Assembly (NCBI RefSeq): GCF_035084215.1
Contig: NC_090366.1
Coordinates: forward strand, 13,640,001 to 13,704,000
DNA length: 64,000 nucleotides
Source: Heptranchias perlo
Taxonomy: Eukaryota
Reading direction: 5' to 3'
Under the pieces are notes generated by a model. That model searched no databases and was not told where the DNA came from. It saw only the letters and a list, made by a program, of their open reading frames with translations. A program made the position numbers and the translations under genes. Shown piece after piece: positions 1 through 60,100 of the stretch (its first letter is position 1; each line of letters starts with the position of its first letter).

Positions 1-304
1 CAAGGCCTTGACATCCTTCCGAAAGTGCGGTGCCCAGAATTGGACACAATACTGGGGCCGAACCAGGGATTTATAAAGAGTTTAGCGTGACTTCCTTGTT
101 TTTGGACTCTCGGCCTCTATTTATAAAGCCCCTGGAGCCGGTATGATTTTCCCATCTTCTCATCAATTCTGACCCTTGGGCTTCTCGGAAGGAAATGACT
201 GTTCCTGGCGCAGTTGCCGAGGGCAACGTTTTGGAAAGGTTTTGCATTCCGCACGTTGATATCTCCCAACCTGTTCCAGCGCAGTGACCGAGACAAAAGG
301 CAGC

Positions 305-1945
305 GGGCGCTAAATTGGGCCGCGTAGCGCCCGTTGTTTCGGCGCTACACGGCCTCTCCGACATCCAAGATGGCGTCTTGGCTGCGCACGCACGTTTCCA
401 GCATGACGGGCGCCGGACGCCATCTTGGTGTAGGAGTTAGCCCGGGCGCAGATAACGAATCATGTAAAGTCGGGAGAAAATGGCTTCAATCAGCGTGCAA
501 CGCTGATTTAAAGTGATAGACACCATTTTGGGACTTAACGCTTAACTCAATGCAGGGTCTTAACCCCAATCATCTGAACGTGTCTTCAAGCATCTGGAGG
601 ACCCCCCACCAGTGCTATTTAAAGGGACCAGGCAGGATTTACAGGTTAGTGGCTGGCTGCCCAGACATTTGTACCTGTTTTTGGAGGCCTCCTGTACTTG
701 AATACCAGGACATGGGGACATAGCCAAACATTTAGAGCCAGGACGTGCAGGAGTGAAGTTCAGAAATGCTTCTACACGCAAAGGGTGGGAGAAGTTTGGG
801 AAGCTCTTCTGCAAATGACAGTTGATGCTAGCTCACTTGTGAATGTTAAATCTGAGATTGATAGATTTCTGTGAGTCTGCTAGACATGGAGTTAGGTCAC
901 AGGTCAACCATGATCTCATTAAATGGTGGAACAGGCTCGAGGGGCTGAACGCCACTGCCACTTGCTGCCTCCTGATATGCACCACCCTCTTCTGCAAGAA
1001 AGCGGGATGTTTGCCTGGGTGATGTGCCTGTCATGGTTGAATAGCTGCCAGTGTGTGTGTGACCTGTGAGTTGTGGGTGGGCTGCTCGCAACAGCGGTAA
1101 TGTGTGAGGGAGAGAGGAGGCATCTGATTGGAAGAGTTGAGTTCTGATTGAAAGGGTTTGTTGGTATGTGGGTGATGGGGGGTGCAGTGTGTGGAGCAGT
1201 GGATGCGGCTGGTGGTGTGGTTGGTCGGAGATGCCACTTGACAGTTGACCTCACTCACCTTGACCACTCTTGTCAAAGCATTGAACTTCTTCCTGCACTG
1301 AATCCCTGTTCTTGGCGCTATGCGCCTGGCATTGACTTTGTCCCCCGCTGCCTCCCACTGCCCTTTGGCCATATGTCTGGAGGGCCTCTTGCCCCCCCAC
1401 CCACCCTGCGGATATAGGATGTCCCTCCTTCTGTCCACCTCTTGCACCAAGGCCTCCAGTGCATCAGCAGAGAACCCTGGTGCATGCTCTCTCGCAGGCC
1501 TGGTACCAACTCAGATCAGCTGATTGGTGAGGTCTGGCATGCAGATTGGAGGATGTGGGATTTAGTGGTGTGCAACCTTTATTCAATGTTTTAACATAAC
1601 TCATCAGTGTGTAAACATAGGGACGGGACCTGCATCTGTGTTTTACGTGTGCACTATCTGATCTCCTTGCAGACAGCAGACTGTTATTTTCAGCAAATAA
1701 CAGGCACTGGCTACCTTTAAGAGATTTGAAGAGACATCCTCCCTTTAAGAGATTGGGGCTCCCCCTGCTGGTGGAAAGTGCGAATTGAATCGAATCGACG
1801 TGCAAGGATTTCAACGCAGCTTGACACTGAGAGGACTGAGGCCGGACAATGTTCTCATCCTCCCTGAGCAGGGACCATTGGGCATGGTTTAATAACGCAT
1901 CACGCTACCCGCGCCCAATAATAGGCCCAATCGAATATCCCCCCC
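305..1945 (-). mobile_element. PIF/Harbinger-like DNA transposon remnant with Myb/SANT-like exon
   Basis: Minus-strand frame ...FSADALEALVQEVDRRRDILYP...QWEAAGDKVNARRIAPRTGIQCRKKFNALTRVVK resembles the Harbinger/NAIF1-type Myb-like DNA-binding domain; GC-rich sub-terminal hairpins at ~318-430. Boundaries approximate. Confidence 0.65.
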
Positions 1946-1968
1946 GCCCCCACAACACTGAGTCTTAC

Positions 1969-2681
1969 CTAGCACCTGTAACTGGACAGGGCTCGTGAAA
2001 GTATATTCGTCATAGCCCTCCAAAGTCAGATAGAAGTAATAGACATCACTGTCGTCCGGTCTGAGATTATTGATCCTCAAGGAGCAATCCTTCTGCTCCA
2101 GGTTCCCAACTATTTCAGCTCGTCCCAAGAATGTGGCCATCGCATATGTGGGATCTTTGGTGTAGTAGACTGTGTATTTCCAATAATGCCAGTACTTAAA
2201 CCAGGCTCCGTGGATGGCCGTATAAGGGTGCGAAGGATAGTCAAAAGTACAGGGTATCACCACGCAAGATCTGCTCACTGCTGTCCTTGGCAGAGCTCGA
2301 ATGGACCATTCCCCGGACAGTACGCCTGAAAAGAAACAGGGAGTGTGGGGGAGGGGGGAAGAAATGAAAGAAACAGAGCTCGGCAAACAGCGTCAAATCT
2401 AGTCATTGAAAGCAAGCTTTACGGTGTTCCGTTCTACCCGGTTGTTTGCGAATTGGCCGCACATATTATCCACATGGCCATGCCCAAACCAATCCCACCC
2501 CCCAGAGTCTCTTGAAATCTGGTCGCTCAACAATTGACCATCAAATATGTTTCCTTTCATTACCCGGTTGCTCTCCCAATTCGGGGCTCTCGATAAAACC
2601 AATTTCCTGACCTCGTCTTAGCAAGTAAATTGTACCTGGTAACAAGCCGAGGAAGATCGACAGCGTTCCGAGGGTCTCCAT
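1969..2681 (-). CDS. MAG/CD22-like Siglec-family Ig receptor, left copy, partial (leader + V-set; remainder expected left of window)
   Basis: Leader 2681-2636, V-set 2325-1969; V-set protein identical to the right copy. Confidence 0.85.
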
Positions 2682-3329
2682 CTTCACTTCCTCTCCTAAA
2701 AGTAAAAATAAAAATGTGGGATCACTTTCGCAGCCCCTTGACCCACCGGTCAGCCCACAACCAACAACAGAGAGTACACTTCAGGTAGAAAAAACAGCCC
2801 ACGATCCCCAAGCCATGGAAGGAGATATTGGGAAGGGTACGGAGCAACATTGGATCAGGAGGAGGCCATTCATCCCTTTGAACCTGTTCCATCATTAAAT
2901 CACACCAGGGCTGATCTGTATTTCAACTCCATTTATCTGCCTTGGTTCTGTAACTCTTAATTCCCTAGCCTAACAAAAATAGTTTTTGGAGGCCCAAACC
3001 AACAAACAGCAAACAAAAAATGAATTGGTCTTTCTCCCCATTTGCTGGTTTGTGGGATCTTGCTGTGCACCAAATTGGCAGCGGAAGAGTGGCTGCTCTT
3101 CAAGAGTAATTCATTGGCTGTAAAGGGATTTGGGATGTCCTGAGATGTTTTTAATGCAGGTAACGAAAGTCTCGCGGAATTAAGACACGTCCCAATTATT
3201 GGCCAACTTGGTCCTTCTTAGCCGTCATATCTTTACTCCGCTGGGCTCCCATTGGCCCAGTCAAAGCCGAATCACATGCGACAGGTTTGTCCTTAAAGCA
3301 AGTTGACCAGATTCCAAACTGGTTGCCCA

Positions 3330-3765
3330 AGGAAGGAAGGACTTGCATTTTTATAGCGCCTTTCACCACCTCAGGACGTCCCAACATGCTTTACAGACAA
3401 TGAAGTGCTTTTTGAAGTGTGGTCACTGTTGTAATGTCGGAAACGTGGCAGCCAATTTGCGCACAGCAAGATCCCACAAACAGCAATGAGATAATGACCA
3501 GATTAATCTGTTTTTTAGTGACGTTGATTGAGGGATAAATATTGGCCCCTGGACACCGGGGAGAACTCCCCCTGCTCTTCTTCGAAAATAGTGGCCGTGG
3601 GATCTTTTACGGCCACCTGAGAGGGGCAGACGGGGCCTCGCTTTAATGTCTCATCCGAAAGACGGCACCTCCGGCAGTGCAGCACTCCCTCAGTACTGGC
3701 ACCGTGGATTATGGGCTCAAGTCTCAGGAGTTGGGCTCGAACCCACGCCCTTCTGACTCAGAGAC
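3330..3765 (-). mobile_element. Deu-domain tRNA-derived SINE (SacSINE1/AmnSINE1-like)
   Basis: Reverse complement of the core gcactg.cggaggtgccgtctttcggatgagac.ttaaa.cgaggccccgtctgcc, B-box-like gggttcgagccc head and aaatgcaagt tail. Mirror at ~56040-56475. Confidence 0.75.
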
Positions 3766-4864
3766 TCCGTGTAGGCACCTTGTGATATCTGTGCTGTGAA
3801 ATGGTGGTGAACCATTTCTGTTTTTACCCCATTACACAAAAGGTCTAATTGTTCAACTCAAAGCTGAGGGGATTGAGGGTAAACCCCGGGGAACGGGTAA
3901 GAAACTGGCCAAAGAGTAGGAATCAAGGAATATCGGTTGGAGGAGATGTGACGAAGTGGGGAGAAGTTCTGAGTATTGGCGTAGGGGCCTTGCTGCACAA
4001 ATGCCCCTACGACCCTCCGAGATCTCCGCGCTCCTCCAATTCTGGTCTCTTGCGCATCTCCCCCAATTTCCATTGCCCCGCCATTGGCTGCGCCGTGCCT
4101 TCATCTGCGTGGGCTCCAAGCTCTGGAACCCCCTCCCTAAATTTCTCCGCCTCTCTCTCCTCCTTTAGGCAAGGAGTCAATTGAAAATTGCAAAAACTGA
4201 GATTGAAAGATACTCGTTGGTCAGGAGTTTTACGGAACCAAGGCGGGGAATGGAGTTAAGATACAGATCAACCATGATCTAATTGGATGGCGGAACAGAC
4301 TCGAGGGGCTGAATGGCCTCCTCCTGTTCCTACAATCGACCAGGGAATGGAAAAAGGAAATCTGGAAGCTTAATTTAAATTGAATTGTTTGAGAAGGACA
4401 AAGAGACACAGGGTCAAACTAGTAACAGATAAATTTAGAACGATGCCAAGAAATTCTTTACACAGGGAATGGACTGGGCGTCCTCCTCAATGTGGTAAAA
4501 ATTGTGGAAGTGACTGGATTTGCCTTTCTGATCCATGACAATCTTGTGATCCTGTATTTACTGCGCAGAATTGAGAGCTGAGCAGCGAAGATAGCATTTT
4601 CACTGATAATGGATTAATTGCTCGGTGAATTACCGAGACCCCCTTCGCACAGTCACACAGATTTGCACACTCACTCACACTCACTCGCACACAGACACAC
4701 ACTGACCCACGCTCACTCACACACACACTTTCACACACACACACACACATTCACTCGCACAAATGTACACACATGCATACGCACACACACTCACACACTG
4801 ACCCACACACAGACACAGACACACACACTCATTCACACACACTGACCCACACACACTTACTCTC

Positions 4865-7800
4865 ATAAGAACATAAGAAATAGCAGCAGGAGTAGGCCAT
4901 TCGGCCCCTCGAGCCTGCTCCGCCATTCAATCAGATCATGGCTGATCTTCGACCTCAACTCCATTTTCCTGCACTATCCCCATATCCCTTGACGCCTTTA
5001 ATATCTAGAAATCTATCGATCTCTGCCTTGAATGCACTCAATGACTGAGCCTCCACAGCCCTCCGGGGTAGAGAATTCCAAAGATTCACCACCCTCTGAG
5101 TGAAGAAATTTCTCCTCCTCTCAGTCCTAAATGGCCGACTCCTTATTCTGAGACTGTGACCCCTGGTTCTAGACTCCCCAGCCAGGGGAAACATCCTCCC
5201 TGCATCTACCCTGTCGAGCCCTGTAAGAATTCTGTATGTTTCAATGAGATCACCCCTCATTCTTCTAATCTCTAGAGAATACAGGCCTAGTCTACTCAAT
5301 CTCTCCTCATACGACAATCCCACCATCCCAGGAATCAGTCTGGTGAACCTTTGTTGCACTCCCTCTACGGCAAGTATATTCTTTCTTAGGTAAGGAGAGC
5401 AAAATTGTACACAATACTCCAGGTGCGGTCTCACCAAGGCCCCATATAATTGCAGTAAGACATCTTTACTCCTGTACTCAAATCCTCTTGTAACAAAGGC
5501 CAACATAACATTTACCTTCCGAATTGCTTGTTGCATCATGTGACTCATGTACAAGGACACCCAGGTCCCTTTGAACATCAACATTTCCCAATCTCTCACC
5601 ATTTAAAAAATACTCTGCATTTCTGTTTTTCCCACCAAAGTGGATAACTTCATATTTTTCTACATTATATTCCATCTGCCATGTTCTTGCCCACTCACTT
5701 AGCCTGTCTATATCCCCTTGAAGTCTCTTTGCATCCTCCTCACAACTCACATTCCCACCCAGTTTTGTGTCATCAGCAAAGTTGGAAATATTACATTTGG
5801 TCCCCTCATCCAAATCATTGATATAGATTGTGACTAGCTGGGGCCCAAGCACTGATCCCTGTGGTACCCCACTAGTCACAGTCTGCCAACCTGAAAAAGA
5901 CCCGTTTATTCCTACTCTCTGTTTTCTGTCTGTTAACCAATTCTCAATCCATGCCAGTATATTACCTCCAATTCCTTGTGCTCTAACTTGGTTCTGTGTG
6001 GAACCTTATCAAAAGCCTTCTGAAAATCCAAATACACCACATCCACTGGTTCCCCCTTATCTATTCTACTCGTTACATCCAACAGGTTTGTCAAACATGA
6101 TTTCCCTTTCATAAATCCATGTCAACTCTGCCAAATCCTATTATGATTTTCTAAGTGTCCTGTTATCACATCCTTTATAATAGATTCGAGCATTTTCCCT
6201 ACTACTGATGTTAGGTTAACCGGTCTGCAGTTCCCTGTTTTCTCTCTCCCTCCTTTCTTAAATAGTGGGGTTACATTTGCCACCCTCCAGTCTGCAGGAA
6301 CCGTTCCAGAATCTATAGAATTTTGGAAGATGACAACCAATGCATCCACTATCTCTATAGCCACCTCTTACAAAACCCTGGGATTTATCGACTTTCAGTC
6401 CCATTCATTTCTCTGGTACTATTTTTTTTAATAATACTAATTTCCTTCAGTTCCTCATTCTCACCAGACCCTCGGTTCTCTAGTATTTCTGGGAGGTTTT
6501 TTGTGTCTTTTTCCGTGAAGACAGACACAAAATATTTGTTTAATTTCTCTGCCATTTCCCGATTCCCCATTATAAATTCTCCCCTCTCTGTTTGTAAGTG
6601 ACCCACATTTGCCTTCGGTCTTTTCCTTTTTACATACCTAAAGAAGCTTTTGCAGTGCGTTTTTATGTCTCTCACTGGTTTACTCTCATATTCTATTTTC
6701 CCTCTTTATCAATTTCTTGGCCCTCCTTTGCTGAATTCTAAAATGCTCCCAATCCTCAGGCTCACTGCTTTTTCTGGCAACTTTATCTGCCTCTTCCTTT
6801 GATTTAATACGATCTTTAATTTCTCTTGTTAGCCACGGTTGGACCAGTTTTCCTGTTGGGTTTTTGTGCCTTAAAGGAATATAGATTTGTTGCAAATTAC
6901 GTGTTAATTCTTTAAATGCCAGCCATTGCCTGTCCACCGTCATACCTTTCAATGCAGTTCCCCAGTCAACCACAGCCGACTTGCGCCTCATACCTTCGTA
7001 GTTTCCTTTGTTTAGATTTAAGACCCTAGTTTCGGATTGAACTACATCATTTTCAGACTTAATGAAGAATTCTATCATATTATGGTCACTCTTCCCTAAG
7101 GGCTCCTTTACAACAAGATTATTAATTAACCCTTTCTCATTGCACAATAAAATAGCCTGTTCCCTAGTTGGTTCCTCAACATACTGATCTAGAAAACCAT
7201 CTCATACACATTCCAGGAATTTGTCCTCCACATGATGAGTGCTAATTTGGTTTGCCCAATCTATATATAGATTAAAGTCCCCCAAGATTACTGTATTTCC
7301 CTTGTTATATGCACTTCTAATTTCCTGCTTTATGCCGTGCCCTACGTTACCACTACTGATTAGTGGCCAATAAACAACTCCCACCAATGTTTTCTGCCCC
7401 TTGCTGTTTCTTAGCTCCACCCAGACTGATTCTGCATCTTGATCTTCTGAGCCAAGACCCTTTCTCACTATTGAACTGATCTCATCCTTTATTAACAGCA
7501 CTACCCCACCTCCTTTTCCTTTTTGCCTGTCCTTCCTAAACCTCGAATATCCCTGAATATTCAGTTCCCAGACTTGGTCACCCTGCAGCCACGTCTCCGT
7601 AATGGCAATTACATCAGACCCATTCACTTCTATTTATGCCGTTAATTCATCGACCTTGTTGTGAACGCTGTGAGCATTCAGATAAAGTGCCTTTAATTTT
7701 GCCTTTTTAACATTTTTTCCTATTTTGACCTTATTTGCTGCTGGCCTTTGTTTCCGCAGCCTTCCAATTTCACTTACTACTTTTCTGCCTTCCACTTCCA

Positions 7801-8130
7801 GCTTTGTTACTCTCCCTTCTGAATCTCCTCTCAGGTTCCCATCTCCCTGCCGAGTTAGTTTAAACCCTCCCCCACAGCACCAGCAAACCTCCCCGCGAGG
7901 ATTTCAGTCCCGGTCCTGTTGAGGTGCAACCCGTCCGGCTTGTACAGGTCCCACCTCCCCCAGAACCGGTCCCAATGCCCCAGGAATCTAAAGCCCTCCC
8001 TCCTGCACCATCTCTCCAGCCACGCATTCATCTGCTCCATCCTCCGATTTCTATACCCGCTAGTGCGCGGGAGGTAATCCGGAGATTACTACTCTCGAGG
8101 TCCTGCTTGTTGATCTCTTTCCGATCTCCT
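4865..8130 (-). mobile_element. Degenerate CR1 LINE (ORF1 esterase fragment, ORF2 endonuclease and RT fragments)
   Basis: Frameshifted pieces DGLHLN (SGNH-like), IAITETWL/GDFN/SDHN (APE), GVPQGSVLGP/FADDTK (RT), RPHLEYC; 3' tail cctactcctgctgctatttcttatgttcttatg. Confidence 0.92.
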
Positions 8131-8711
8131 AAAAATCTGCCTGCAGGACCTCGCCCCTCACTCTCACACACGCACACTCGCTCTCACACTCGCACACTCA
8201 CACGTACGCACACACACAAACACACACGCAAATATATTCAAGGAAATGGAATATTACCTAAGGATGAAAAGAGCCTGGTTCTACTGACATAAGACTTACC
8301 CTGGGTTGAATCGTATCGGGGGATCAGTTTGTTATGTTGCAAATCTGGAACTGTTGAGTCGAACAGGCTCACCAGTTATTAGCTTTCACTTTCTATTGCG
8401 TTGTGTAAGAGGTGATAAGTGCCTCTTATGAAAGAGTGAGCTGGAGATCAGGGTGAACTCAGACAATCTGTGTTTGGGGGATGTTATCAGTCCTCCCGGT
8501 CGGATGGTTTCTGACGTAATGCACCCATGGCCTTACTTGGCGCAGTTGATGCCAAGTTGTTTGAAATTTTTTAAAGCTGTTGTGTCTTATTATGAACTAA
8601 TTCTGACCGACCAGGGCACAGGAACAGAGAGCAAACCCACCGAGAGTCATTTACTGGGAGTAACAATCATCCCTCATGGGTCAAACTCCGCTGTATGTTC
8701 ACGGAAATCAG

Positions 8712-11700
8712 GAGTCTCGGCGCTGTGCGTTCTCTGAACTCGGGAGTCTCGGCGCTGTGCGTTCCCTGAAGTCGGGAGTCTCGGTGCTGTGCGTTCCCTG
8801 AACACGGGAGTCTCGGCGCTGTGCGTTCCCTGAACTCGGGAGTCTCGGTGCTGTGCGTTCCCTGAACACGGGAGTCTCGGCGCTGTGCGTTCCCTGAAGT
8901 CGGGAGTCTCGGTGCTGTGCGTTCCCTGAACACGGGAGTCTCGGCGCTGTGCGTTCTCTGAACTCGGGAGTCTCGGTGCTGTGCGTTCCCTGAACACGGG
9001 AGTCTCGGCGCTGTGCGTTCCCTGAACTCGGGAGTCTCGGCGCTGTGCGTTCCCTGAACTTGGGAGTGTCGGCGCTGTGCGTTCCCTGAACTCGGGAGTG
9101 TCGGCGCTGTGCGTTCTCTGAACTCGGGAGTGTCGGCGCTGTGCGTTCCCTGAACTCGGGAGTCTCGGCGCTGTGCGTTCCCTGAACTCGGGAGTCTCGG
9201 CGCTGTGCGTTCCCTGAACTCGGGAGTGTCGGCGCTGTGCGTTCCCTGAACTCGGGAGTGTCGGCGCTGTGCGTTCTCTGAACTCGGGAGTCTCGGCGCT
9301 GTGCGTTCCCTGAACTCGGGAGTCTCGGCGCTGTGCGTTCCCTGAACTCGGGAGTCTCGGCGCTGTGCGTTCCCTGAACTCGGGAGTCTCGGCGCTGTGC
9401 GTTCCCTGAACCCGGGAGTCTCGGCGCTGTGCGTTCCCTGAACTCGGGAGTCTCGGCGCTGTGCGCTCCTGATCACGGGAGTGTCGGCGCTGTGCGTTCC
9501 CTGAACTCGGGAGTGTCGGCGCTGTGCGTTCCCTGAACCCGGGAGTGTCGGCACTGTGCGCTCCTGATCACGGGAGTGTCGGCGCTGTGCGTTCTCTGAA
9601 CTCGGGAGTGTCGGCGCTGTGCGTTCCCTGAACTCGGGAGTCTCGGCGCTGTGCGTTCCCTGAACACGGGAGTCTCGGCGCTGTGCGTTCCCTGAACCCG
9701 GGAGTCTCGGCGCTGTGCGTTCCTGATCACGGGAGTGTCGGCGCTGTGCGTTCCCTGAACTCGGGAGTCTCGGCGCTGTGCGTTCCTGATCACGGGAGTG
9801 TCGGCGCTGTGCGTTCCCTGAACTCGGGAGTGTCGGCGCTGTGCGTTCCCTGAACTCGGGAGTGTCGGCGCTGTGCGTTCTCTGAACTCGGGAGTCTCGG
9901 CGCTGTGCGTTCTCTGAACTCGGGAGTCTCGGCGCTGTGCGTTCTCTGAACTCCGGAGTCTCGGCGCTGTGCGTTCCCTGAACTCGGGAGTCTCGGCGCT
10001 GTGCGTTCCCTGAACTCGGGAGTGTCGGCGCTGTGCGTTCCCTGAACCCGGGAGTGTCGGCACTGTGCGTTCCCTGAACTCGGGAGTCTCGGCGCTGTGC
10101 GTTCTCTGAATTCGGGAGTGTCGGCGCTGTGCGTTCCCTGAACTCGGGAGTCTCGGCGCTGTGCGTTCTCTGAATTCGGGAGTCTCGGCGCTGTGTGTTC
10201 TCTGAACTCGGGAGTCTCGGCGCTGTGCGTTCTCTGAATTCGGGAGTCTCGGCGCTGTGCGTTCCCTGAACTCCGGAGTCTTGGCGCTGTGCGTTCCCTG
10301 AACTCGGGAGTCTCGGCGCTGTGCGTTCCCTGAACTCCGGAGTCTCGGCGCTGTGCGTTCCCTGAACTCGGGAGTCTCGGCGCTGTGCGTTCTCTGAACT
10401 CGGGAGTGTCGGCGCTGTGCGTTCTCTGAACTCCGGAGTCTCGGCGCTGTGCGTTCCCTGAACTCGGGAGTGTCGTGCTGTGCGTTCCCTGAACTCGGGA
10501 GTCTCGGTGCTGTGCGTTCCCTGAACTCGGGAGTCTCGGCGATGTGCGTTCTCTGAACTCGGGAGTGTCGGCGCTGTGCGTTCTCTGAACTCGGGAGTCT
10601 CGGCGCTGTGCGTTCCCTGAACCCGGGAGTCTCGGCGCTGTGCGTTCCCTGAACTCGGGAGTCTCGGCGCTGTGCGTTCCCTGAACCCGCGAGTCTTGGC
10701 GCTGTGCGTTTCCTGAACCCGGGAGTGTTGGCGCTGTGCGTTCCCTGAACCCGGGAGTGTTGGCGCTGTGCGTTCCCTGAACCTGGGAGTGTTGGCGCTG
10801 TGCGTTCCCTGAACCCGGGAGTGTTGGCGCTATGCGTTCCCTGAACCCGGGAGTGTCGGCGCTGTGCGTTCTCTGAACTCGGGAGTCTCGGTGCTGTGCA
10901 TTCCCTGAACTCGGGAGCCTCGGTGCTGTGCATTCCCTGAACCCGGGAGTGTTGGCGCTGTGCGTTCCCTGAACTCGGGAGTCTCGGCGCTGTGCGTTCC
11001 CTGAACACGGGAGTCTCGGCGCTGTGCGTTCCCTGAACCCGGGAGTCTCGGCGCTGTGCGTTCCTGATCACGGGAGTGTCGGCGCTGTGCGTTCCCTGAA
11101 CTCGGGAGTCTCGGCGCTGTGCGTTCCTGATCACGGGAGTGTCGGCGCTGTGCGTTCCCTGAACTCGGGAGTGTCGGCGCTGTGCGTTCCCTGAACTCGG
11201 GAGTGTCGGCGCTGTGCGTTCTCTGAACTCGGGAGTCTCGGCGCTGTGCGTTCTCTGAACTCGGGAGTCTCGGCGCTGTGCGTTCTCTGAACTCCGGAGT
11301 CTCGGCGCTGTGCGTTCCCTGAACTCGGGAGTCTCGGCGCTGTGCGTTCCCTGAACTCGGGAGTGTCGGCGCTGTGCGTTCCCTGAACCCGGGAGTGTCG
11401 GCACTGTGCGTTCCCTGAACTCGGGAGTCTCGGCGCTGTGCGTTCTCTGAATTCGGGAGTGTCGGCGCTGTGCGTTCCCTGAACTCGGGAGTCTCGGCGC
11501 TGTGCGTTCTCTGAATTCGGGAGTCTCGGCGCTGTGTGTTCTCTGAACTCGGGAGTCTCGGCGCTGTGCGTTCTCTGAATTCGGGAGTCTCGGCGCTGTG
11601 CGTTCCCTGAACTCCGGAGTCTTGGCGCTGTGCGTTCCCTGAACTCGGGAGTCTCGGCGCTGTGCGTTCCCTGAACTCCGGAGTCTCGGCGCTGTGCGTT

Positions 11701-12452
11701 CCCTGAACTCGGGAGTCTCGGCGCTGTGCGTTCTCTGAACTCGGGAGTGTCGGCGCTGTGCGTTCTCTGAACTCCGGAGTCTCGGCGCTGTGCGTTCCCT
11801 GAACTCGGGAGTGTCGTGCTGTGCGTTCCCTGAACTCGGGAGTCTCGGTGCTGTGCGTTCCCTGAACTCGGGAGTCTCGGCGATGTGCGTTCTCTGAACT
11901 CGGGAGTGTCGGCGCTGTGCGTTCTCTGAACTCGGGAGTCTCGGCGCTGTGCGTTCCCTGAACCCGGGAGTCTCGGCGCTGTGCGTTCCCTGAACTCGGG
12001 AGTCTCGGCGCTGTGCGTTCCCTGAACCCGCGAGTCTTGGCGCTGTGCGTTTCCTGAACCCGGGAGTGTTGGCGCTGTGCGTTCCCTGAACCCGGGAGTG
12101 TTGGCGCTGTGCGTTCCCTGAACCTGGGAGTGTTGGCGCTGTGCGTTCCCTGAACCCGGGAGTGTTGGCGCTATGCGTTCCCTGAACCCGGGAGTGTCGG
12201 CGCTGTGCGTTCTCTGAACTCGGGAGTCTCGGTGCTGTGCATTCCCTGAACTCGGGAGCCTCGGTGCTGTGCATTCCCTGAACCCGGGAGTGTTGGCGCT
12301 GTGCGTTCCCTGAACTCGGGAGTCTCGGTGCTGTGCATTCCCTGAACTCGGGAGCCTCGGTGCTGTGCATTCCCTGAACTCGGGAGTGTCGGCGCTGTGC
12401 GTTCTCTGAACTCGGGAGTGTCGTGCTGTGCGTTCCCTGAACTCGGGAGTGT
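8712..12452. repeat. 32-bp CpG-rich minisatellite, about 117 units
   Basis: Unit cgctgtgcgttccctgaactcgggagtctcgg with variants; contains a 1341-bp higher-order duplication. Confidence 0.97.
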
Positions 12453-13553
12453 TAACACCGTTGGATTTCTGAAATCCGTTGTGTTCGCACTGTACGTTGT
12501 CTGAACTCGGTCGCCTGCCGGACAATGACTGAATCAAATTACACATTCCAGAGAACTTGGTTGAATCGTCTCCTCCCACATCCTGTCGGTGGCATTCCAA
12601 GAATATCCTCCTGCCTTTTCCAGTGCCACGAGATGGAGACATTGCAGCCAATATCAGCGGCCCGAAACGCAACCCATGTCTTTGAACCATTAGGAGACCC
12701 ACTGGAACCAGCCTTTTGAAGGTTGACAGCCTGATTACATGCTTACCAAGTACAGTGTAGTAACATGCAGACAGACAGTCTCTCCGTTAACACAGCTACT
12801 GCTCGAGAAACAAGCAAGACATTTCGAAGCTGGCACTCAAAGTGGCTTTACACATGATTTATTCACAACCGTGTTCTTGGAATTAAGATTGCACTCTCTC
12901 CTGCCTGTTTCTCTCTTTCCCTTCCTCTTTCCCTGTCTCATTCATCCTCTCCCTTCTCCTCTCATGCCCTCCCTCTCATCCTCTCTCTCTCTCTCCCCCC
13001 CTCTTTCACCAGTGTCTCACATTCCCCCTTTCCTCTGGTCTCCTGAGACTGTGACAGTGAACATTACTTAGAGTGAGTGGGTGTGAGTGGAGGAAAGTGA
13101 GAGAAGGACAGTGAGTGTGTAAATCAGAGTGTGCGAGAGAGATTAAGGATAATGAGAGTGAGTGAGTGTGTGTTAGAGTGTGAGAGAAGGACAGTGAGTG
13201 TGTGAATCAGAGTGCGAGAGGGATTAATGATGATGAGAGTGAGTGAGTGTGTGTTAGAGTGTGAGAGAAGGATAGTGAATGTATGAATCAGAGTGCGAGA
13301 GGGATTAAGGATAATGGTGCATGGGTGGGTGTGAGAGTGTGAGAGAAGATTTGTGAAACCTGAGAGGGTCTCTTCTTAATCTCATCCAAAAGACGGCACC
13401 TCTGACAGTGCGGCACTCCCTCGGTACTGGGAGTGTCGGCCTGGATTATGGGCTCAAGTTTGTGGAGTGGGGACTTCAAATCTCTGGATTAATGTCACAG
13501 CGCCAGGACACAAAGGGTTAACAGCTTGCTTAAAACAAAAGACAAAGGTCCTT

Positions 13554-13733
13554 CATTTGTGCAAAGTGCTATTTTCTCACTTGTTTCTCACTTCCTCATC
13601 TGACTCACAGTGACAGACCAACCATTTCTAATTAAATACACAGAGTCACAACACAGGAAAAGGACATTCAGCCCAAGCAGTGCGTGCTGGCATTTATTCT
13701 CCACACGAGCAGTCGGACAGGTCCTGGGTAAGT
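13554..13733 (+). promoter_or_regulatory. Putative myeloid-type promoter and non-coding first exon of the B genes
   Basis: Clustered ttgtgcaa (C/EBP-like), cacttcctc (ETS/PU.1-like, ~13589-13597), tgactca (AP-1, 13601-13607), then strong donor tgg|gtaagt at 13727; acceptor 14354 precedes the ATG. Conserved in B2 and B3. Motif-only inference. Confidence 0.5.
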
Positions 13734-13736
13734 AAA

Positions 13737-14200: not shown

Positions 14201-14396
14201 TTTCTCTTTCTTAAAGCCTTGTAACTCACTGCAGACAACCCATCATCCCACATAGAATCAAATTAGTCCGTGAAGACATTGTCTCGAAGCAGTTTTAATA
14301 TCTGCAGAGCTGTCGGGCAAGAGGTGAGTTCTCATTTACTTGTTTCTCTTTCAGACCTTGAGAGTGAGAAGTTGATGAAATATCTGAGAGTGGACA

Positions 14397-19090: not shown

Positions 19091-19152
19091 GTAAGTGTGA
19101 AGGTTTAACTTGTTTTTTTGAAAACTCTTGCTTCAATTTTCCCTCCTTAAAG

Positions 19153-21298: not shown

Positions 21299-21405
21299 CT
21301 GCACGGTTGGGCCTCAATTGCAGATCCAATGATCTAATTGGACTCAAACAAGCCAATCACAGATTGTGCCGATTGTCACACTGCTCATTTCCTTTTCTAT
21401 TACAG

Positions 21406-45400: not shown

Positions 45401-46885
45401 TACCGGAAACGTGAAGCTGTGTTGCTGGGTAATAGTTGAAGTTTTCCCCGTTGTCAAATTCTACTCTGAAAAAATAAGGACCTGCATCTTCCGCTGTGAT
45501 GTTGTTTATAATCAGGGAACAGTCGCCATCTTTCAGGTCTCCAGACAGACCGGTCCGATGTCTGAACCGGTCCGACTCGTGTCCGTGGTCCTTGGAGTGA
45601 AAGGCTAGGGGAGCCCATGGTCTCACTTCCTCAGTGTTAAACCAGACTCCATCTCGATGTTTGTTTGCCAAATTCGATGGGTAACTGTAATGGCATGGAA
45701 TCAGCGCACACAAACCTTTCTGTGCTCTCACATCTCGTGGGGTGTCGGCCTTCCACTCTTGTGACAATACAGCTGAGGAGATAAAATATCGATATTTAGC
45801 ACTGGATGACTCGTAGATCCACTGGACTCGAGATCCACCATCCCCCCCTTCCATCACTGGCCTACTGTGGCTCCAGTGTGTACCATCTACAGGGTACACA
45901 TGGAACTCCCCAAGGTTACAGTGACAGCATCTCCCTCCCCTGCGACCTCTACCACCCAAAAGGTCAAGAGCAGCAATGTTGGAGGTTGCTCATCACCTCC
46001 AAGTTCCCCTCCGAGTCACACACCATCCCGAGTTGGAGATATATCGGCCGTTCCTCCATCGTCGTTGGGTCAATATCCTGGAACTCGCACTGTGGGAGAA
46101 TCTTCATCACACGGACTGCAGCGGTTCAAGAAGGCGGCTCACCACCACCGTCTCAAGGGCAACTCGGGATGGGCAATAAATGCCGGCCTCGCCAGCGACG
46201 CCCACATCCCAAGAATGAATAAAAAACAGCGTTGATCGCTGGCCAGTCAAACAATGTCAACAACTTGCATTTACATCACGTCTTTAAAAAAAACGTCCCA
46301 AGGCGCTTCACAGGAGTGATTATCAGACACAATTTGTCACTGAGCCACATAAGGAGATATGAGGACAGGTGACCAAAAGCTTGGTCAAAGAGGTCAGTTT
46401 TAAGGAGCGTCTTAAAGGAGGAGAGAGAGAGGCGGAGAGGATTAGGGAGGGAATTCCAGAGCTTAGGGCCCAGGCAGCTGAAGGCACGGCCGCCAATGGT
46501 GGAGCGATGGAAATCGGGGATGGACAAGAGGCCAGAATTGGAGGAGTGCAGAGATCTCGGAGGGTTGTAGGGCTGGAGGAGGTTGCAGTGATGTGGGGGG
46601 GTGGGGGTGGGGAGAGGAGGCCATGGAGGGATTTGAACACGAGGATGATGGTTTTAAAATCGAGGTGTTCCCGGACCTGGAGCCAATGTCGGTCAGCGAG
46701 CACAGGGGGTGATGGGTGAACGGGACTCGGTGCGAGTTAGTACACTGAGTCACTGCTGAATTTGGTCCCTCGTCATAACTCAATAACAATGATCGTTTGC
46801 ACCGACTATTATCCATAAATATCTCCGACCTGACGATGATATTACCTTGGAGAAGTGACAGGAGGAAGTAAGGTTTCCTGATCAT
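42469..46885 (-). CDS. Siglec-like receptor, copy B3 (inverted)
   Basis: Leader 46885-46846, V-set 45772-45404 (GPYFFRVEF), C2 45057-44764, C2 43845-43564, TM 42565-42469 (IYICVRK); canonical splice sites and open frames. Confidence 0.88.
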
Positions 46886-47219: not shown

Positions 47220-48502
47220 CCTCCAACAGTGCAGCGCTCCCTCAGTACTGACCCTCTGACCGTGCAGCGCTCCCTCAGTACTGACCCACCGACAGTGCAG
47301 CGCTCACTCAGTACTGACCCTCCGACAGTGCGGCGCTCCCTCAGTACTGACCCTCCGACAGTGCAGCGCTCCCTCAGTACTGACCCTCCGACAGTGCGGC
47401 GCTCCCTCAGTACTGACCCTCCGACAGTGCGGCGCTCCCTCAGTACTGACCCTCCGACAGTGCGGAACTCCCTCAGTGCTGACCCTCCGACAGTGCTGCG
47501 CTCCCTCAGTACTGACCCTCCGCCAGTGCAGCGCTCCCTCAGTACTGACCCTCCGACAGTGCAGCGCTCCCTCAGTACTGACCCTCCGACAGTGCAGCGC
47601 TCCCTCAGTACTGACCCTCCGACAGTGCGGCGCTCCCTCAGTACTGACCCTCCGACAGTGCGGTGCTCCCTCAGTACTGACCCTCTGAGAGTGCAGCGCT
47701 CCCTCAGTACTGACCCTCTGACAGTGCAGCGCTCCCTCAGTACTGATCCTCCGACAGTGCGGCGCTCCCTCAGTACCGACCCTCCGACAGTGCGGCGCTC
47801 CCTCAGTACTGACCCTCCGACAGTGCGGCGCTCCCTCGGTACTGACCCTCCGACAGTGCGGCGCTCCCTCAGTACTGATCCTCCGACAGTGCGGCGCTCC
47901 CTCAGTACTGACCCTCCGACAGTGCGGCGCTCCCTCAGTACTGACCCTCCGACAGTGCGGCGCTCCCTCAGTACTGACCCTCCGACAGTGCGGCGCTCCC
48001 TCTGTCTGACCCTCCGACAGTGCGGATCTCCCTCAGTACTGACCCTCCGACAGTGCTGCGCTCCCTCAGTACTGACCCTCCGCCAGTGCAGCGTTCCCTC
48101 AGTACTGACCCTCCGACAGTGCAGCGCTCCCTCAGAACTGACCCTCCGACAGTGCAGCGCTCCCCCAGTCCTGACCCTCCGACAGTGCGGCGCTCCCTCA
48201 GTACTGACCCTCCGACAGTGCGGCGCTCCCTCAGTACTGACCCTCCGACAGTGCAGCGCTCCCTCAGTACTGACCCTCTGACAGTGCAGCGCTCCCTCAG
48301 AACTGACCCTCCGACAGTGCGGCGCTCCCACAGTACTGACCCTCCGACAGTGCGGCGCTCCCTCGGTACTGACCCTCCGACAGTGCGGCGCTCCCTCAGT
48401 ACTGACCCTCCGACAGTGCGGCGCTCCCTCAGTACTGACCCTCCGACAGTGCGGCGCTCCCTCAGTACTGACCCTCCGACAGTGCGGCGCTCCCTCAGTA
48501 CT
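47220..48502 (-). repeat. 33-bp SINE-derived minisatellite, about 39 units (B3)
   Basis: Reverse-complement unit; source of the 11-aa repeat ORFs at 47195-48553. Confidence 0.95.
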
Positions 48503-49899
48503 GCCTCTGGGAGTGTTGCTGGATTATGGACTCAAATCCCTGGATTTCCTTGAACTGGAAAGATGTCGTGTTCGACAGACTTCAGCTCTACACCCCCATC
48601 TCAATAAAAAGTAGAGATCTTTCGACAGCCTAAATCTCTCTTTACAAAGTCACGACACCAACAAAGAGCGACATTGGTCATGGAAGTTAATTACAATCGT
48701 TGCTTTACTTACCCAGGACCTGTCCGACTGCTCGTGTGGAGAGTAAATGCCAGCACGCACTGCTTGGGCTGAGTGGCCTTTTCCTGAGTTGTGACTCTGT
48801 GTATTTAATTAGAAATGGTTGGCATGTCACTGTGAGTCAGATGAGGAAGTGAGAAACAAGTGAGAAAATAGCACTTTGCACAAATGAAGGACCTTTGTCT
48901 TTTGTTTTAAGCAAACTGTTAACCCTTTGTGTCCTGGCGCTGTGACATTAATCCAGAGATTTCAAGTCCCCACTCCAGAAACTGGAGCCCATAATCCAGG
49001 CCGACACTCCCAGTACCGAGGGAGTGCCGCACTGTCAGAGGTGCCGTCTTTTGGATGAGATTAAAAAGAGACCCTCTCAGGTTTCACAAATCTTCTCCCA
49101 CACTCTCACACCCACCCATGCACCATTATCCTTAATCCCTCTCGCACTCTGATTCATACATTCACTATCCTTCTCTCACACTCTAACACACACCCACTCA
49201 CTCTCATTATCCTTAATCTCTCGCACACTCTGATTTACACACTCACTGTCCTTCTCACTTCCACTCACACCCACTCACTCTAAGTAATGTTCACTGTCAC
49301 AGTCTCAGGAGACCAGAGGAAAGGGGGAATGTGAGACACTGGTGAAAGAGTGGGGGAGAGAGAGAGAGAGAGGATGAGAGGGAGGGCATGAGAGGAGAAG
49401 GGAGAGGATGAATGAGACAGGGAAAGAGGAAGGGAAAGAGAGAAACAGGCAGGAGAGAGTGCAATCTTAATTCCAAGAACACGGTTGTGAATAAATCATG
49501 TGTAAAGCCACTTTGAGTGCCAGCTTCGAAATGTCTTGCTTGTTTCTCCAGCAGTAGCTGTGTTAACGGAGAGACTGTCTGTCTGCATGTTACTACACTG
49601 TACTTGGTAAGCATGTAATCAGGCTGACAACCTTCAAAAGGCTGGTTCCAGTGGGTCTCCTAATGGTTCAAAGACATGGGTTGCGTTTCGGGCCGCTGAT
49701 ATTGGCCGTAATGTCTCCATCTCGTGGCACTGGAAAAGGCAGGAGGATATTCTTGGAATGCCACCGACAGGATGTGGGAGGAGACGATTCAACCAAGTTC
49801 TCTGGAATGTGTAATTTGATTCAGTCATCGTCCGGCAGGCGACCGAGTTCAGACAACGTACAGTGCGAACACAACGGATTTCAGAAATCCAACGGTGTT

Positions 49900-50740
49900 A
49901 ACACTCCCGAGTTCAGGGAACGCACAGCGCCGACACTCCCGAGTTCAGAGAACGCACAGCGCCGAGACTCCCGAGTTCAGGGAACGCACAGCGCCGAGAC
50001 TCCTGAGTTCAGAGAACGCACAGCGCCGAGACTCCCGGGTTCAGGGAACGCACAGCGCCGAGGCTCCCGAGTTCAGAGAACGCACAGCGCCGAGACTCCC
50101 GAGTTCAGGGAACGCACAGCGCCGACACTCCCGAGTTCAGGGAACGCACAGCGCCGACACTCCCGGGTTCAGGGAACGCACAGCGCCGAGACTCCCGAGT
50201 TCAGGGAACGCACAGCGCCGAGACTCCTGAGTTCAGGGAACGCACAGCGCCGAGACTCCCGAGTTCAGAGAACGCACAGCACCGACACTCCCGAGTTCAG
50301 AGAACGCACAGCGTCGACACTCCCGAGTTCAGGGAACGCACAGCGCCGAGACTCCCGAGTTCAGGGAACGCACAGCGCCGAGACTCCCGTGTTCAGGGAA
50401 CGCACAGCGCCGACTCTCCCGAGTTCAGGGAACGCACAGCGCCGAGACTCCTGAGTTCAGGGAACGCACAGCGCCGACTCTCCCGAGTTCAGGGAACGCA
50501 CAGCGCCGAGACTCCCGTGTTCAGGGAACGCACAGCGCCGACACTCCTGAGTTCAGGGAACGCACAGCGCCGAGACTCCCGAGTTCAGGGAACGCACAGC
50601 GCCGAGACTCCCGAGTTCAGAGAACGCACAGCACCGACACTCCCGAGTTCAGAGAACGCACAGCGCCGAGACTCCCGAGTTCAGGGAACGCACAGCGCCG
50701 AGACTCCCGAGTTCAGGGAATGCACAGCGCCGAGACTCCT
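49900..50740. repeat. 32-bp minisatellite, mirror array, about 26 units
   Basis: Reverse-complement unit with the same flanks as 8712-12452. Confidence 0.97.
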
Positions 50741-50930
50741 GATTTCCGTGAACATACAGCGGAGTTTGACCCATGAGGGATGATTGTTACTCCCAGTAAA
50801 TGACTCTCGGTGGGTTTGCTCTCTGTTCCTGTGCCCTGGTCGGTCAGAATTAGTTCATAATAAGACACAACAGCTTTAAAAAATTTCAAACAACTTGGCA
50901 TCAACTGCGCCAAGTAAGGCCATGGGTGCA

Positions 50931-57124: not shown

Positions 57125-60100
57125 ATGGAGACCCTCGGAACGCTGTCGATCTTCCTCGGCTTGTTACCAGGTACAATTTACTTGCTAAGATGAGGTCAGG
57201 AAATTGGTTTTATCGAGAGCCCCGAATTGGGAGAGCAACCGGGTAATGAAAGGAAACATATTTGATGGTCAATTGTTGAGCGACCAGATTTCAAGAGACT
57301 CTGGGGGGTGGGATTGGTTTGGGCATGGCCATGTGGATAATATGTGCGGCCGATTCGCAAACAACCGGGTAGAACGGAACACCGTAAAGCTTGCTTTCAA
57401 TGACTAGATTTGACGCTGTTTGCCGAGCTCTGTTTCTTTCATTTCTTCCCCCCTCCCCCACACTCCCTGTTTCTTTTCAGGCGTACTGTCCGGGGAATGG
57501 TCCATTCGAGCTCTGCCAAGGACAGCAGTGAGCAGATCTTGCGTGGTGATACCCTGTACTTTTGACTATCCTTCGCACCCTTATACGGCCATCCATGGAG
57601 CCTGGTTTAAGTACTGGCATTATTGGAAATACACAGTCTACTACACCAAAGATCCCACATATGCGATGGCCACATTCTTGGGACGAGCTGAAATAGTTGG
57701 GAACCTGGAGCAGAAGGATTGCTCCTTGAGGATCAATAATCTCAGACCGGACGACAGTGATGTCTATTACTTCTATCTGACTTTGGAGGGCTATGACGAA
57801 TATACTTTCACGAGCCCTGTCCAGTTACAGGTGCTAGGTAAGACTCAGTGTTGAGGGGGCGGGGGGATATTCGATTGGGCCTATTATTGGGCGCGGGTAG
57901 CGTGATGCGTTATTAAACCATGCCCAATGGTCCCTGCTCAGGGAGGATGAGAACATTGTCCGGCCTCAGTCCTCTCAGTGTCAAGCTGCGTTGAAATCCT
58001 TGCACGTCGATTCGATGCAATTCGCACTTTCCACCAGCAGGGGGAGCCCCAATCTCTTAAAGGGAGGATGTCTCTTCAAATTTCTTAAAGGTAGCCAGTG
58101 CCTGTTATTTGCTAAAAATAACAGTCTGCTGTCTGCAAGGAGATCAGATAGTGCACACGTAAAACACAGATGCAGGTCCCGTCCCTATGTTTACACACTG
58201 ATGAGTTATGTTAAAACATTGAATAAAGGTTGCACACCACTAAATCCCACATCCTCCAATCTGCATGCCAGACCTCACCAATCAGCTGATCTGAGTTGGT
58301 ACCAGGCCTGTGAGAGAGCATGCACCAAGGTTCTCTGCTGATGCACTGGAGGCCTTGGTGCAAGAGGTGGACAGAAGGAGGGACATCCTATATCCGCAGG
58401 GTGGGTGGGGGGGCAAGAGGCCCTCCAGACATATGGCCAAAGGGCAGTGGGAGGCAGCGGGGGACAAAGTCAATGCCAGGCGCATAGCGCCAAGAACAGG
58501 GATTCAGTGCAGGAAGAAGTTCAATGCTTTGACAAGAGTGGTCAAGGCGAGTGAGGTCAACTGTCAAGTGGCATCTCCAACCAACCACACCACCAGCCGC
58601 ATCCACTGCTCCACACACTACACCCCCCATCACCCACATACCAACAAACCCTTTCAATCAGAACTCAACTCTTCCAATCAGATGCCTCCTCTCTCCCTCA
58701 CACATTACCGCTGTTGCGAGCAGCCCACCCACAACTCACAGGTCACACACACACTGGCAGCTATTCAACCATGACAGGCACATCACCCAGGCAAACATCC
58801 CGCTTTCTTGCAGAAGAGGGTGGTGCATATCAGGAGGCAGCAAGTGGCAGTGGCGTTTAGCCCCTCGAGCCTGTTCCACCATTTAATGAGATCATGGATG
58901 ACCTGTGACCTAACTCCATGTCTAGCAGACTCACAGAAATCTATCAATCTCAGATTTAACATTCACAAGTGAGCTTGCATCAACTGTCATTTGCAGACGA
59001 GCGTTCCAAACTTCTCCCACCCTTTGCGTGTAGAAGCATTTCTGAACTTCACTCCTGCACGTCCTGGCTCTAAATGTTTGGCTATGTCCCCATGTCCTGG
59101 TATTCAAGTACAGGAGGCCTCCAAAAACAGGTACAAATGTCTGGGCAGCCAGAAGCAATAATCCAGCCACTAACCTGTAAATCCTGCCTGGTCCCTTTAA
59201 ATAGCACTGGTGGGGGGTCCTCCAGATGCTTGAAGACACGTTCAGATGATTGGGGTTAAGACCCTGCATTGAGTTAAGCGTTAAGTCCCAAAATGGTGTC
59301 TATCACTTTAAATCAGCGTTGCACGCTGATTGAAGCCATTTTCTCCCGACTTTACATGATTCGTTATCTGCACCCGGGCTAACTCCTACACCAAGATGGC
59401 GTCCGGCGCCCGTCATGCTGGAAACGTGCGTGCGCAGCCAAGACGCCATCTTGGATGTCGGAGAGGCCGTGTAGCGCCGAAACAACGGGCGCTCCGCGGC
59501 CCAATTTAGCGCCCGCTGCCTTTTGTCTCGGTCACTGCGCTGGAACAGGTTGGGAGATATCAACGTGCGGAATGCAAAACCTTTCCAAAACGTTGCCCTC
59601 GGCAACTGCGCCAGGAACAGTCATTTCCTTCCGAGAAGCCCAAGGGTCAGAATTGATGAGAAGATGGGAAAATCATACCGGCTCCAGGGGCTTTATAAAT
59701 AGAGGCCGAGAGTCCAAAAACAAGGAAGTCACGCTAAACTCTTTATAAATCCCTGGTTCGGCCCCAGTATTGTGTCCAATTCTGGGCACCGCACTTTAGG
59801 AAGGATGTCAAGGCCTTGGAGAGGGTGCAGAGGAGATTTACCAGAATGGGACCAGGGATGAGGGACTTCAGTTATGTGGAGAGACTGGAGAAGCTGGGAT
59901 TGTTCTCCTCAGAGCAGAGAAGGTTAAGGGGAGATTTAATCGAGGGGTTCAAAAATATGAGGGGGTTTTGATAGAGTAAATAAGGAGAAACTGTTTCCAG
60001 TGGCAGGAGGGTCGGTAACCAGAGGACACAGATTGAAGATAATTGGCAAAAGAACCAGAGGGGGAGATGAGGAGAATGTTTTTTATGCAGCGAGTTGTTC

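Follow-up and report, generated by a model that had tools for sequence, protein, structure and literature searches.

Enlargement of a Siglec gene cluster by inverted duplication has a mammalian precedent, since Cao and colleagues reportedly described in 2009 (Immunogenetics 61:401) an inverse duplication of the CD33-related Siglec (CD33rSiglec) locus. More generally, inverted duplications arise by fold-back or template switching primed at short inverted repeats, and arm-to-arm conversion takes place in the palindromes of primate sex chromosomes. Between neighbouring primate Siglec genes, gene conversion is described for SIGLEC11/SIGLEC16 and SIGLEC5/SIGLEC14 (PMC5701461, PMC4042635), and it is reported that human Siglec-XII (R122C) and great-ape Siglec-5 carry a mutated arginine and do not recognise sialic acid (PMC6288428). 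Fish are stated to hold regularly only Siglec-1, CD22, MAG and Siglec-15 and to lack CD33-related inhibitory Siglecs, in a paper that concerns teleosts and uses neither the word 'shark' nor 'cartilaginous' (PMC7226832). A literature search in which subscription journals were thinly covered found no paper on Siglec clusters of cartilaginous fish. Here we describe a Siglec locus of the sharpnose sevengill shark Heptranchias perlo, contained in a stretch of 64,000 bases (assembly GCF_035084215.1, contig NC_090366.1, positions 13,640,001 to 13,704,000) that we refer to as the window. It holds a large palindrome, each arm of which carries an inward-pointing Siglec gene with the essential arginine and an outward-pointing gene that lacks it. 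With a probability of roughly 0.7, we read the locus as a real, lineage-specific inverted segmental duplication in the H. perlo Siglec cluster, whose copies later became mosaic and now differ in patches of their V-set domains.

The window contains neither N nor soft-masked letters, and a repeat search found 330 inverted pairs in it, the 25 longest of which are 91-99% complementary. In a self-blastn comparison, 59818-36658 is tiled in reverse by 1-25199 in seven main blocks of 95.8-97.9% identity. Aligned globally, the two arms are 97.36% identical: of 21,337 ungapped columns, 564 are mismatched, by 311 transitions and 253 transversions, and there are 49 indels, of which 11 reach 50 bp or more. 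The first letter of the window has its partner at 59818, so the window edge truncates the left arm; 25 kb of it is contained here, and the palindrome reaches its outer ends beyond the window. A third copy of the inward-gene unit, at 26251-36944, repeats 12670-23372 directly with 95.7-98.65% identity and is inverted relative to 49683-38551 (self-blastn). From left to right, the left arm (made up of A at 1-12669, B at 12670-23372 and C, which extends to 25199) is followed by a filler of 1,051 bp, the third copy and the right arm (C^, B^, A^), with a spacer of 11.5 kb between the arms; we call the left-arm inward unit B, the direct third copy B' and the right-arm copy B^. Only the 33-bp array of the filler, and about 100 bp beside it, have matches elsewhere in the window. 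Two long arms in opposite orientation flank a spacer, and the junction coincides with a short stretch of inverted homology, as expected of an inverted segmental duplication. An earlier, sequence-only reading of this DNA had proposed an inverted repeat of at least 25 kb with a third inward gene in its spacer; the repeat search, self-blastn and arm alignment confirm the former and self-blastn the latter, and its coordinates were right within about 100 bp.

How the orientation may have switched is suggested by the inner end of the palindrome. Two 3' ends of a long interspersed nuclear element (LINE), IRa (23085-23372) and IRb (24912-25199), form a 288-bp inverted pair of 91.3% identity; the B unit ends at IRa, and the left arm ends at IRb. 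At the inversion junction (J1), the letters switch from IRa type to reverse-IRb type within the first ~130 bp of the 288-bp homology, and every later diagnostic site is of the reverse-IRb type. Because this change falls inside the homology, the orientation switch is best read as homology-mediated; a fold-back, a switch of template or a recombination between the inverted LINE ends would each fit it. Probably a 13.6-kb tandem duplication came first and gave rise to B and B'. A strand or template switch, or else a recombination, would then have linked the 288-bp LINE end that closes B' with the oppositely oriented one that closes the left arm, so that all sequence to the left was copied in reverse. 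A single switch of this kind on a prior tandem of B and B' would reproduce the whole layout, in an order that we infer. Exchange between the copies afterwards made them mosaics whose proteins differ almost only in two V patches.

The inward gene was modelled from stop-to-stop reading frames, Pfam and tblastn with homologues, each exon being searched singly. Its seven exons encode a leader, a V-set domain, two C2-type immunoglobulin (Ig) domains (C2a and C2b), a transmembrane segment and two cytoplasmic segments (cy1 and cy2), with phases 0/1, 1/1, 1/1, 1/1, 1/2, 2/0 and 0/stop and AG/GT splice sites throughout. All 21 exons of B, B' and B^ are open and their phases match, as had been claimed for the Ig and transmembrane exons. 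The Siglec arginine, which in this family sits on strand F and binds the carboxylate of sialic acid, is present in the three V-sets (..FRIE.. or ..FRVE..) and aligns with that of sialoadhesin (..YNFRIE.. or ..YFFRVE.. against ..YNFRFE..). No charged residue occurs in the transmembrane segment of any of the three copies, and the tails are identical, ending in ..DNIYENCNLDEDSIYANV before the stop, with a single canonical ITIM (immunoreceptor tyrosine-based inhibitory motif) at the very end and a YxN motif before it. The three copies are thus intact genes for predicted inhibitory receptors, each with an arginine-bearing V-set, two C2 domains, an uncharged transmembrane segment and an ITIM tail.

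The RefSeq models of H. perlo agree with these exons at 96-100%. P0180 matches B^, including its copy-specific residues, and P0181 consists of the V, C2a and C2b domains of B followed by C2b, the transmembrane segment and the tail of B'. The resulting two C2b domains of P0181 mean either that transcription reads through 13 kb or that the tandem duplicates were merged in annotation. In P0180 (isoform X1), some 15 residues are missing from the start of the B^ C2b exon (43564-43845), as if an internal acceptor were used. A mismatch of phase between the transmembrane and ITIM exons was considered and rejected: the 85-nt cy1 exon, which is present in P0180, restores the phase, and among 24 listed public runs, all available as Logan contigs, run X8 has over 33851-39850 a contig that joins 33993 to 34954 (cy1 to cy2 of B') with GT..AG ends. 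This run is RNA-like, with a depth of 6e3-1.6e4 on 34851-35650, none on 35851-36650 or 38851-39650, and the splice joint just mentioned; it is deep only on the last exon and the 3' untranslated region (UTR). In a capped count over contigs that can be chimeric, its letters fit no single copy consistently: only the B type occurs at 35538, 35646 and 35649, only the letter shared by B and B^ at 35185, and both letters at 35602. A ~500-bp segment around cy1 has a second copy, ~85% identical, upstream of the gene that contains the exon (13350-13840 versus 20027-20528; 13610-13744 versus 20187-20271), and P0181 takes the upstream copy, in another frame, as an alternative first exon. Since a cy1-like exon is also found in the Carcharodon model P0017, cy1 is an old exon.

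In both copies of the outward gene, the leader and the V exon have open frames and AG/GT sites; between the arms, the V exons show one difference in 357 nt and the leaders are identical. Both V-sets have tyrosine at the arginine position (..YYFYLTL.., against ..YYFRGDL.. in MAG and the arginine of the inward V-sets), and in the alignment of MAG ..YYFRGDLGGYNQYTF.. with outward ..YYFYLTLEGYDEYTF.. arginine is likewise replaced by tyrosine. By analogy with the arginine-mutated primate Siglecs, the tyrosine form is probably devoid of canonical sialic-acid binding. The same divergent pair of genes in each arm, with arginine in the inward (3/3) and not in the outward (2/2) V-sets, had been recognised by the sequence-only reading, and this description stands. 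We rejected an interpretation of the two genes as paired receptors, as their V-sets are only 28% identical, with arginine opposite tyrosine, and the inward tails are identical and inhibitory. Given this low V identity and a separation of 10-12 kb across LINE and satellite DNA, the inward and outward genes are better regarded as neighbours. The first 3 kb of the arms (1-3000 versus 59818-56819), comprising the start of the outward gene and non-coding DNA, show 26 differences in 2,999 positions (0.87%; Poisson p = 3e-12); this outermost part is three times less diverged than the 2.6% arm average.

Both genes encode Siglec-type V-sets followed by C2-set domains, and binding of sialylated glycans is predicted for the inward copies. 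Pfam assigns V-set and Ig_CD22 to the inward V exon (V-set 8e-11) and to the outward V exon (8.1e-8), and C2-set_2 (7e-9), Ig_3 and I-set to Ig exons of the window; the outward C2 open reading frame has no Pfam match. The inward V-set has 33 PDB sequence matches, of which the top 16 are to Siglecs; sialoadhesin ranks first (9e-17, 64.8 bits), and scores are lower for Siglec-5 (39.6 bits), Siglec-10 (38.4) and CD33 (37.9), and for MAG, also within 38-40 bits. Inward C2a matches CD33 domain 2 best (36.7 bits), then Siglec-8 (nectin-4 next), Siglec-10 and MAG (27.1). The outward V-set has 75 PDB sequence matches, the best 17 of them Siglecs, with sialoadhesin and MAG level at 57.4 bits; the outward C2 exon is closest to domain 2 of MAG, then of CD22, and the third Ig exon matches FCRL5, CEA and CD22 domains 6-7. 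An AlphaFold model of the outward V-set has a predicted local distance difference test score of 89.6 from a 26-row alignment, which is made of Siglec-like V-sets and so favours Siglec fold matches; with this model, the first 33 rows listed by Foldseek (ranks 1-44) are all Siglecs, with query-normalised template modelling scores of 0.86-0.90 for sialoadhesin and 0.87-0.89 for MAG. Siglec V-sets have a C-x4-C pattern on strand B, a cysteine on strand E and no canonical cysteine after Y-x on strand F, and the translations of both genes read accordingly (inward GLCALIPC...DCSLII...YNFR; outward SCVVIPC...DCSLRI...YYFY).

The wider relationships of the inward gene lie among elasmobranchs. A search of its V exon against 1.84 billion representatives gave 1,131 matches at E<=0.001, the ten best of which, when examined, were elasmobranch RefSeq or GenBank proteins, and in a word-indexed search with P0017 116 of 1,622 candidates reached E<=1e-5, every named one being from a shark, ray or skate and two rows bearing no name; the named matches of a further search, all but one row, were elasmobranch as well. 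A quick maximum likelihood tree was built from the first V-set of each protein (62 rows, 122 columns). Its rows include 58 of 241 V-set-bearing proteins, namely the named ones and a chosen spread of the top 150, and the references from outside the elasmobranchs are lizard sialoadhesin, a paddlefish CD22-like protein and a catfish CD22/MAG-like protein only. In this tree the three inward V-sets, P0180 and P0181 form one clade with a Shimodaira-Hasegawa-like approximate likelihood ratio (SH-aLRT) support of 99, nested in a larger one (SH-aLRT 88) whose 26 rows are all elasmobranch, and closest to a Pristiophorus protein. The branch of the outward V-set is long (1.27); none of its pairings is supported, and its identities do not exceed 38%. 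A search for its relatives, confined to proteins of 80-255 amino acids, yielded eight candidates and no match. The expectation that the V-sets group with Siglecs is borne out by the PDB sequence and fold matches. The label 'CD33-related-like' for the inward gene fits its architecture and C2a domain; its V-set scores far higher with sialoadhesin (64.8 bits) than with any CD33-related Siglec (at most 39.6 bits). CD33-related tails carry a membrane-proximal ITIM and a distal ITIM-like motif, and the inward tail departs from this, with its one ITIM at the end and YxN before it. 'MAG/CD22-like' describes the outward gene at the level of best matches (V, C2 and fold), and the tree gives its V-set no supported partner. 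MAG has five Ig domains and CD22 seven, followed by a transmembrane segment and a tail; of the outward gene, the window contains the leader, the V exon and two more Ig exons.

Sequence has passed between the copies. When the three B units are aligned together (12,133 columns), the copy that differs alone is B^ at 180 sites, B' at 155 and B at 124, and no single tree fits the three regions tabulated below, which indicates that tracts moved between copies. Divergence between the arms is uneven per kb (chi-square p = 5e-30 over 22 bins; p = 3e-9 without two bins beside large indels), and the arms share a perfect tract of 748 bp (21241-21988), covering the last exon and 3'UTR of the inward gene, of which ~6e-5 would be expected. 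The RNA-like run X8 is deep on the stretch of B' that matches this tract. The mosaic sites and the heterogeneous divergence support sequence exchange between the copies, as the earlier reading implied. The palindrome as a 'diversification system' fared less well: B', in direct orientation, has a share in the exchange equal to that of the arms, a single nucleotide distinguishes the outward V exons, and the 'pair' consists of neighbours. That the duplication is young and lineage-specific agrees with the arm divergence of 2.6% and with the H. perlo-only clade. At a neutral rate of ~1e-9 per site per year, with shark rates said to be slower, the divergence would correspond to roughly 13 million years or more, a figure that conversion would make an underestimate.

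Differences between the inward proteins are concentrated in the V exon. Between B and B', 31 nt and a 9-nt indel differ in the 360 nt of the V exon, and only four positions differ in the remaining 915 coding nt; the V-exon codon changes comprise 18 nonsynonymous and three synonymous ones. They form two patches. The first, in the C-C' region, reads HTETGDSFA in one form and NTEKERPWAPLA in the other, and the second, a 15-residue stretch around and after the arginine, exists in a second form as FFRVEFGNGENFNYY. Both forms of the second patch recur in other sharks at 12 of 15 residues, and the longer form of the first at 10 of 12, so import of tracts from older paralogue lineages fits better than fresh point mutation. 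The patches occupy positions that we take to contact the ligand in sialoadhesin and to set specificity in Siglec-7. Since the differences sit in two V patches beside the arginine, B, B' and B^ probably differ in the sialoglycans they bind.

It is possible that the duplication, though real, is functionally neutral, a case of birth-and-death turnover in which the palindromic form has no role in diversification. On this view the V patches would be conversion tracts that hitch-hiked, and one or more copies might be silent. This would sit well with the exchange shown by the direct copy B', which equals that of the arms, with the near-identity of the outward V exons (1/357 nt), with the LINE and satellite DNA that makes up the intergenic 10-12 kb, with the merger of B and B' into one RefSeq model and with the letters of the RNA-like run, which fit no one copy. 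Against such neutrality, which we consider unlikely, 21 of 21 inward exons have kept their frames and splice sites at a background divergence of 2.6%, the non-V exons lie six-fold below the arm average (4/915 nt), the V changes are 18 to 3 in favour of nonsynonymous ones and lie beside the binding arginine, and two letters occur at 35602 in the RNA-like run. A more ambitious scenario is that the palindrome and the extra copy act as a germline generator of variants of an inhibitory Siglec, in which patch tracts would be drawn from older paralogues and arm-to-arm conversion would keep the C2, transmembrane and ITIM parts and the outward partner uniform. We hold this to be doubtful. If true, it would mean that sharks independently evolved a cassette-like retuning of the glycans recognised, and did so with a class of receptors reputedly absent from bony fish.

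Several observations weigh against the duplication as we read it. None of the listed Logan contigs bridges 36658-36944, because 36651-38850 is LINE at depths of 1e6-1e7, and neither novel junction is spanned by a read or contig. The four best runs share a single sample and organism, which may be those of the assembly itself, and variant letters are not consistently assignable to copies among the listed contigs, whose counting was capped. Neither outward gene is complete within the window, which contains at most the leader, the V exon and two Ig exons of it, the B-type first patch has no counterpart among the homologous proteins compared, and no donor of the B-type patches lies within the window. 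The order of the duplications is not readable from divergence, because the copies are mosaics. The LINE at the palindrome centre (36651-38850) is very abundant in H. perlo and in a related organism, with depths of 1e6-1e7 in three DNA runs.

Some of these observations would be expected if the palindrome were an artefact of assembly, with the right arm being the other haplotype, or a mis-walked path of the assembly graph, joined in reverse at the high-copy LINE, and the animal itself having one arm and the tandem B and B'. The sole orientation switch (36658-36944) does lie inside the repeat of extreme depth, unbridged by the listed contigs, and the runs that hold the stretch best may stem from the assembly's own sample. 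However, the window contains no N, and the arms differ by 2.6%, by 49 indels and by the unequal lengths of three satellite arrays, which is more than we would expect between haplotypes. Three copies in a three-way mosaic cannot be two alleles, the right arm runs on into further outward-gene exons, which start at 60965 and 63264 and are in order, and a contig of 15.7 Mb would require a second false join at the outer end. At 35185, the B'-specific letter and that of the other copies are both present in DNA runs, at depths of 68 versus 253 (X1) and 30 versus 111 (X2); the other letters found in contigs are those of the remaining copies. A contig over sequence identical in all three copies is ~2-3 times deeper than the copy-specific contigs, in a comparison made without a genome-wide baseline. 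The artefact is weakened by the internal evidence of mosaic copies, indels, unequal arrays, in-order exons past the arm and the 15.7-Mb contig, and we regard it as quite unlikely; a real inverted duplication accounts for the locus better.

Repeats have changed independently in the copies since the duplication, as the indels of at least 50 bp and the unequal satellite arrays attest (Table 1). The LINE remnant at 4958-8100 lies between the two genes of the left pair, and the 33-bp unit recurs in the filler at 25539-25732, beside the head of a tRNA-like short interspersed element (SINE). Another reverse transcriptase reading frame (RVT_1, 342 amino acids, 2.8e-11) occupies 61459-62484 on the reverse strand, in the intron between the C2 and third Ig exons of the right outward gene. 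Outside the window, the same contig encodes four proteins annotated as 'MAG-like' or 'Schwann cell myelin protein-like' (P0097, P0259, P0260 and P0142), with arginine and ITIM-type tails, whose Ig repeats (..SPKETAVRVVGA..) closely resemble the third outward exon. They were considered as products of window genes and set aside as other genes, no match of at least 80% being found in the window.

Table 1. Features of the H. perlo Siglec palindrome, in window positions
Feature	Position	Strand	Details
Left arm	1-25199		inverted match to 59818-36658; runs off left window edge
Right arm	36658-59818		inverted match to left arm
Filler, left arm to third copy	25200-26250		tRNA-like SINE head, 33-bp array 25539-25732, CT-rich stretch
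Third copy (B') of 10.7-kb inward-gene unit	26251-36944	+	direct to 12670-23372, inverted to 49683-38551
IRa, LINE 3'-end fragment	23085-23372		inverted partner of IRb
IRb, LINE 3' end, inner end of left arm	24912-25199		reverse transcriptase of same LINE at 23739-24464 (RVT_1, 8.4e-24)
Inversion junction J1	36658-36944		B' passes from IRa-type to reverse-IRb-type letters
Mirror copy of IRa in right arm	38551-38838		
Inward gene, copy B	14397-21522	+	leader 14397-14436, V 15509-15868, C2a 16624-16917, C2b 17719-18000, transmembrane 18994-19090, cy1 20187-20271, cy2 21406-21522 (stop, ITIM SIYANV)
Inward gene, copy B'	27993-35070	+	leader 27993-28032, V 29104-29472, C2a 30228-30521, C2b 31438-31719, transmembrane 32717-32813, cy1 33909-33993, cy2 34954-35070
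Inward gene, copy B^	40428-46885	-	leader 46846-46885, V 45404-45772, C2a 44764-45057, C2b 43564-43845, transmembrane 42469-42565, cy1 41301-41385, cy2 40428-40544
Variable V patches, copy B	15634-15850	+	C-C' region with 9-nt indel; 15 residues around and after arginine
Outward gene, left copy	1969-2681	-	leader 2636-2681, V-set 1969-2325, tyrosine at arginine position; remainder left of window
Outward gene, right copy	57125-63539	+	leader 57125-57170, V 57481-57837, C2 60965-61252, Ig 63264-63539; extends past window
Odd-one-out sites	12670-15486		B^ 30, B' 85, B 53
Odd-one-out sites, V-exon bin			B^ 4, B' 2, B 27
Odd-one-out sites	15978-21320		B^ 132, B' 16, B 22
LINE remnant (reverse transcriptase and endonuclease)	4958-8100	-	RVT_1 5.6e-13, Exo_endo_phos 1.7e-8; mirror ~51.3-54.8 kb
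32-bp minisatellite	8689-12450		117.8 copies; right arm 49903-50761, 26.8 copies
33-bp minisatellite	13736-14061 / 27395-27658 / 47220-48503		9.9, 8.0, 38.9 copies
29-bp minisatellite	20612-21299 / 34334-34847 / 40651-40961		23.7, 17.7, 10.7 copies

The genes themselves are already in the automatic annotation, and what we describe is a lineage-specific palindromic expansion of known shark Siglec genes. P0180 and P0181 are the same genes as the inward copies; these RefSeq models have automatic names only, and neither the palindrome nor the third copy nor the V patches can be read from them. Since inverted duplication and conversion are already accepted in the evolution of the mammalian Siglec cluster, the locus introduces no new principle. 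Automatic annotation of sharks and rays contains many short Siglecs with an ITIM, which make up a large family, and the locus offers a dated and dissectable example of how that family expands, with a junction to which a mechanism can be assigned, three near-identical intact genes that differ at the binding site and an arginine-less neighbour. If the assembly holds, it would also be a natural experiment for mapping residues to glycan specificity.

Comparison with the systems described above brings out what is shared and what is particular to H. perlo. The mammalian CD33rSiglec locus likewise grew when a large part of a Siglec cluster was duplicated in reverse; this happened long ago and is common to mammals, whereas the one described here is 2.6% diverged and confined to the H. 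perlo lineage. SIGLEC11/16 and SIGLEC5/14 resemble the shark genes in that neighbouring paralogues exchange ectodomain-coding sequence. However, these primate pairs combine an inhibitory and an activating receptor with one shared ectodomain, whereas the inward copies of H. perlo all have an uncharged transmembrane segment and the same ITIM tail, and the arginine-less gene is only 28% identical to them in the V-set. The outward gene resembles the arginine-mutated primate Siglecs, with the essential arginine replaced in an otherwise intact V-set; it differs from them in that the residue is tyrosine and the V-set sialoadhesin- or MAG-like. As in fold-back duplications and sex-chromosome palindromes, there is a short inverted homology at the start of the arms, a spacer and an uneven arm divergence. 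Arm identity, at 97.4%, is far below the near-identity of sex-chromosome palindromes, and conversion in the H. perlo palindrome thus appears to be occasional rather than a process that maintains the arms.

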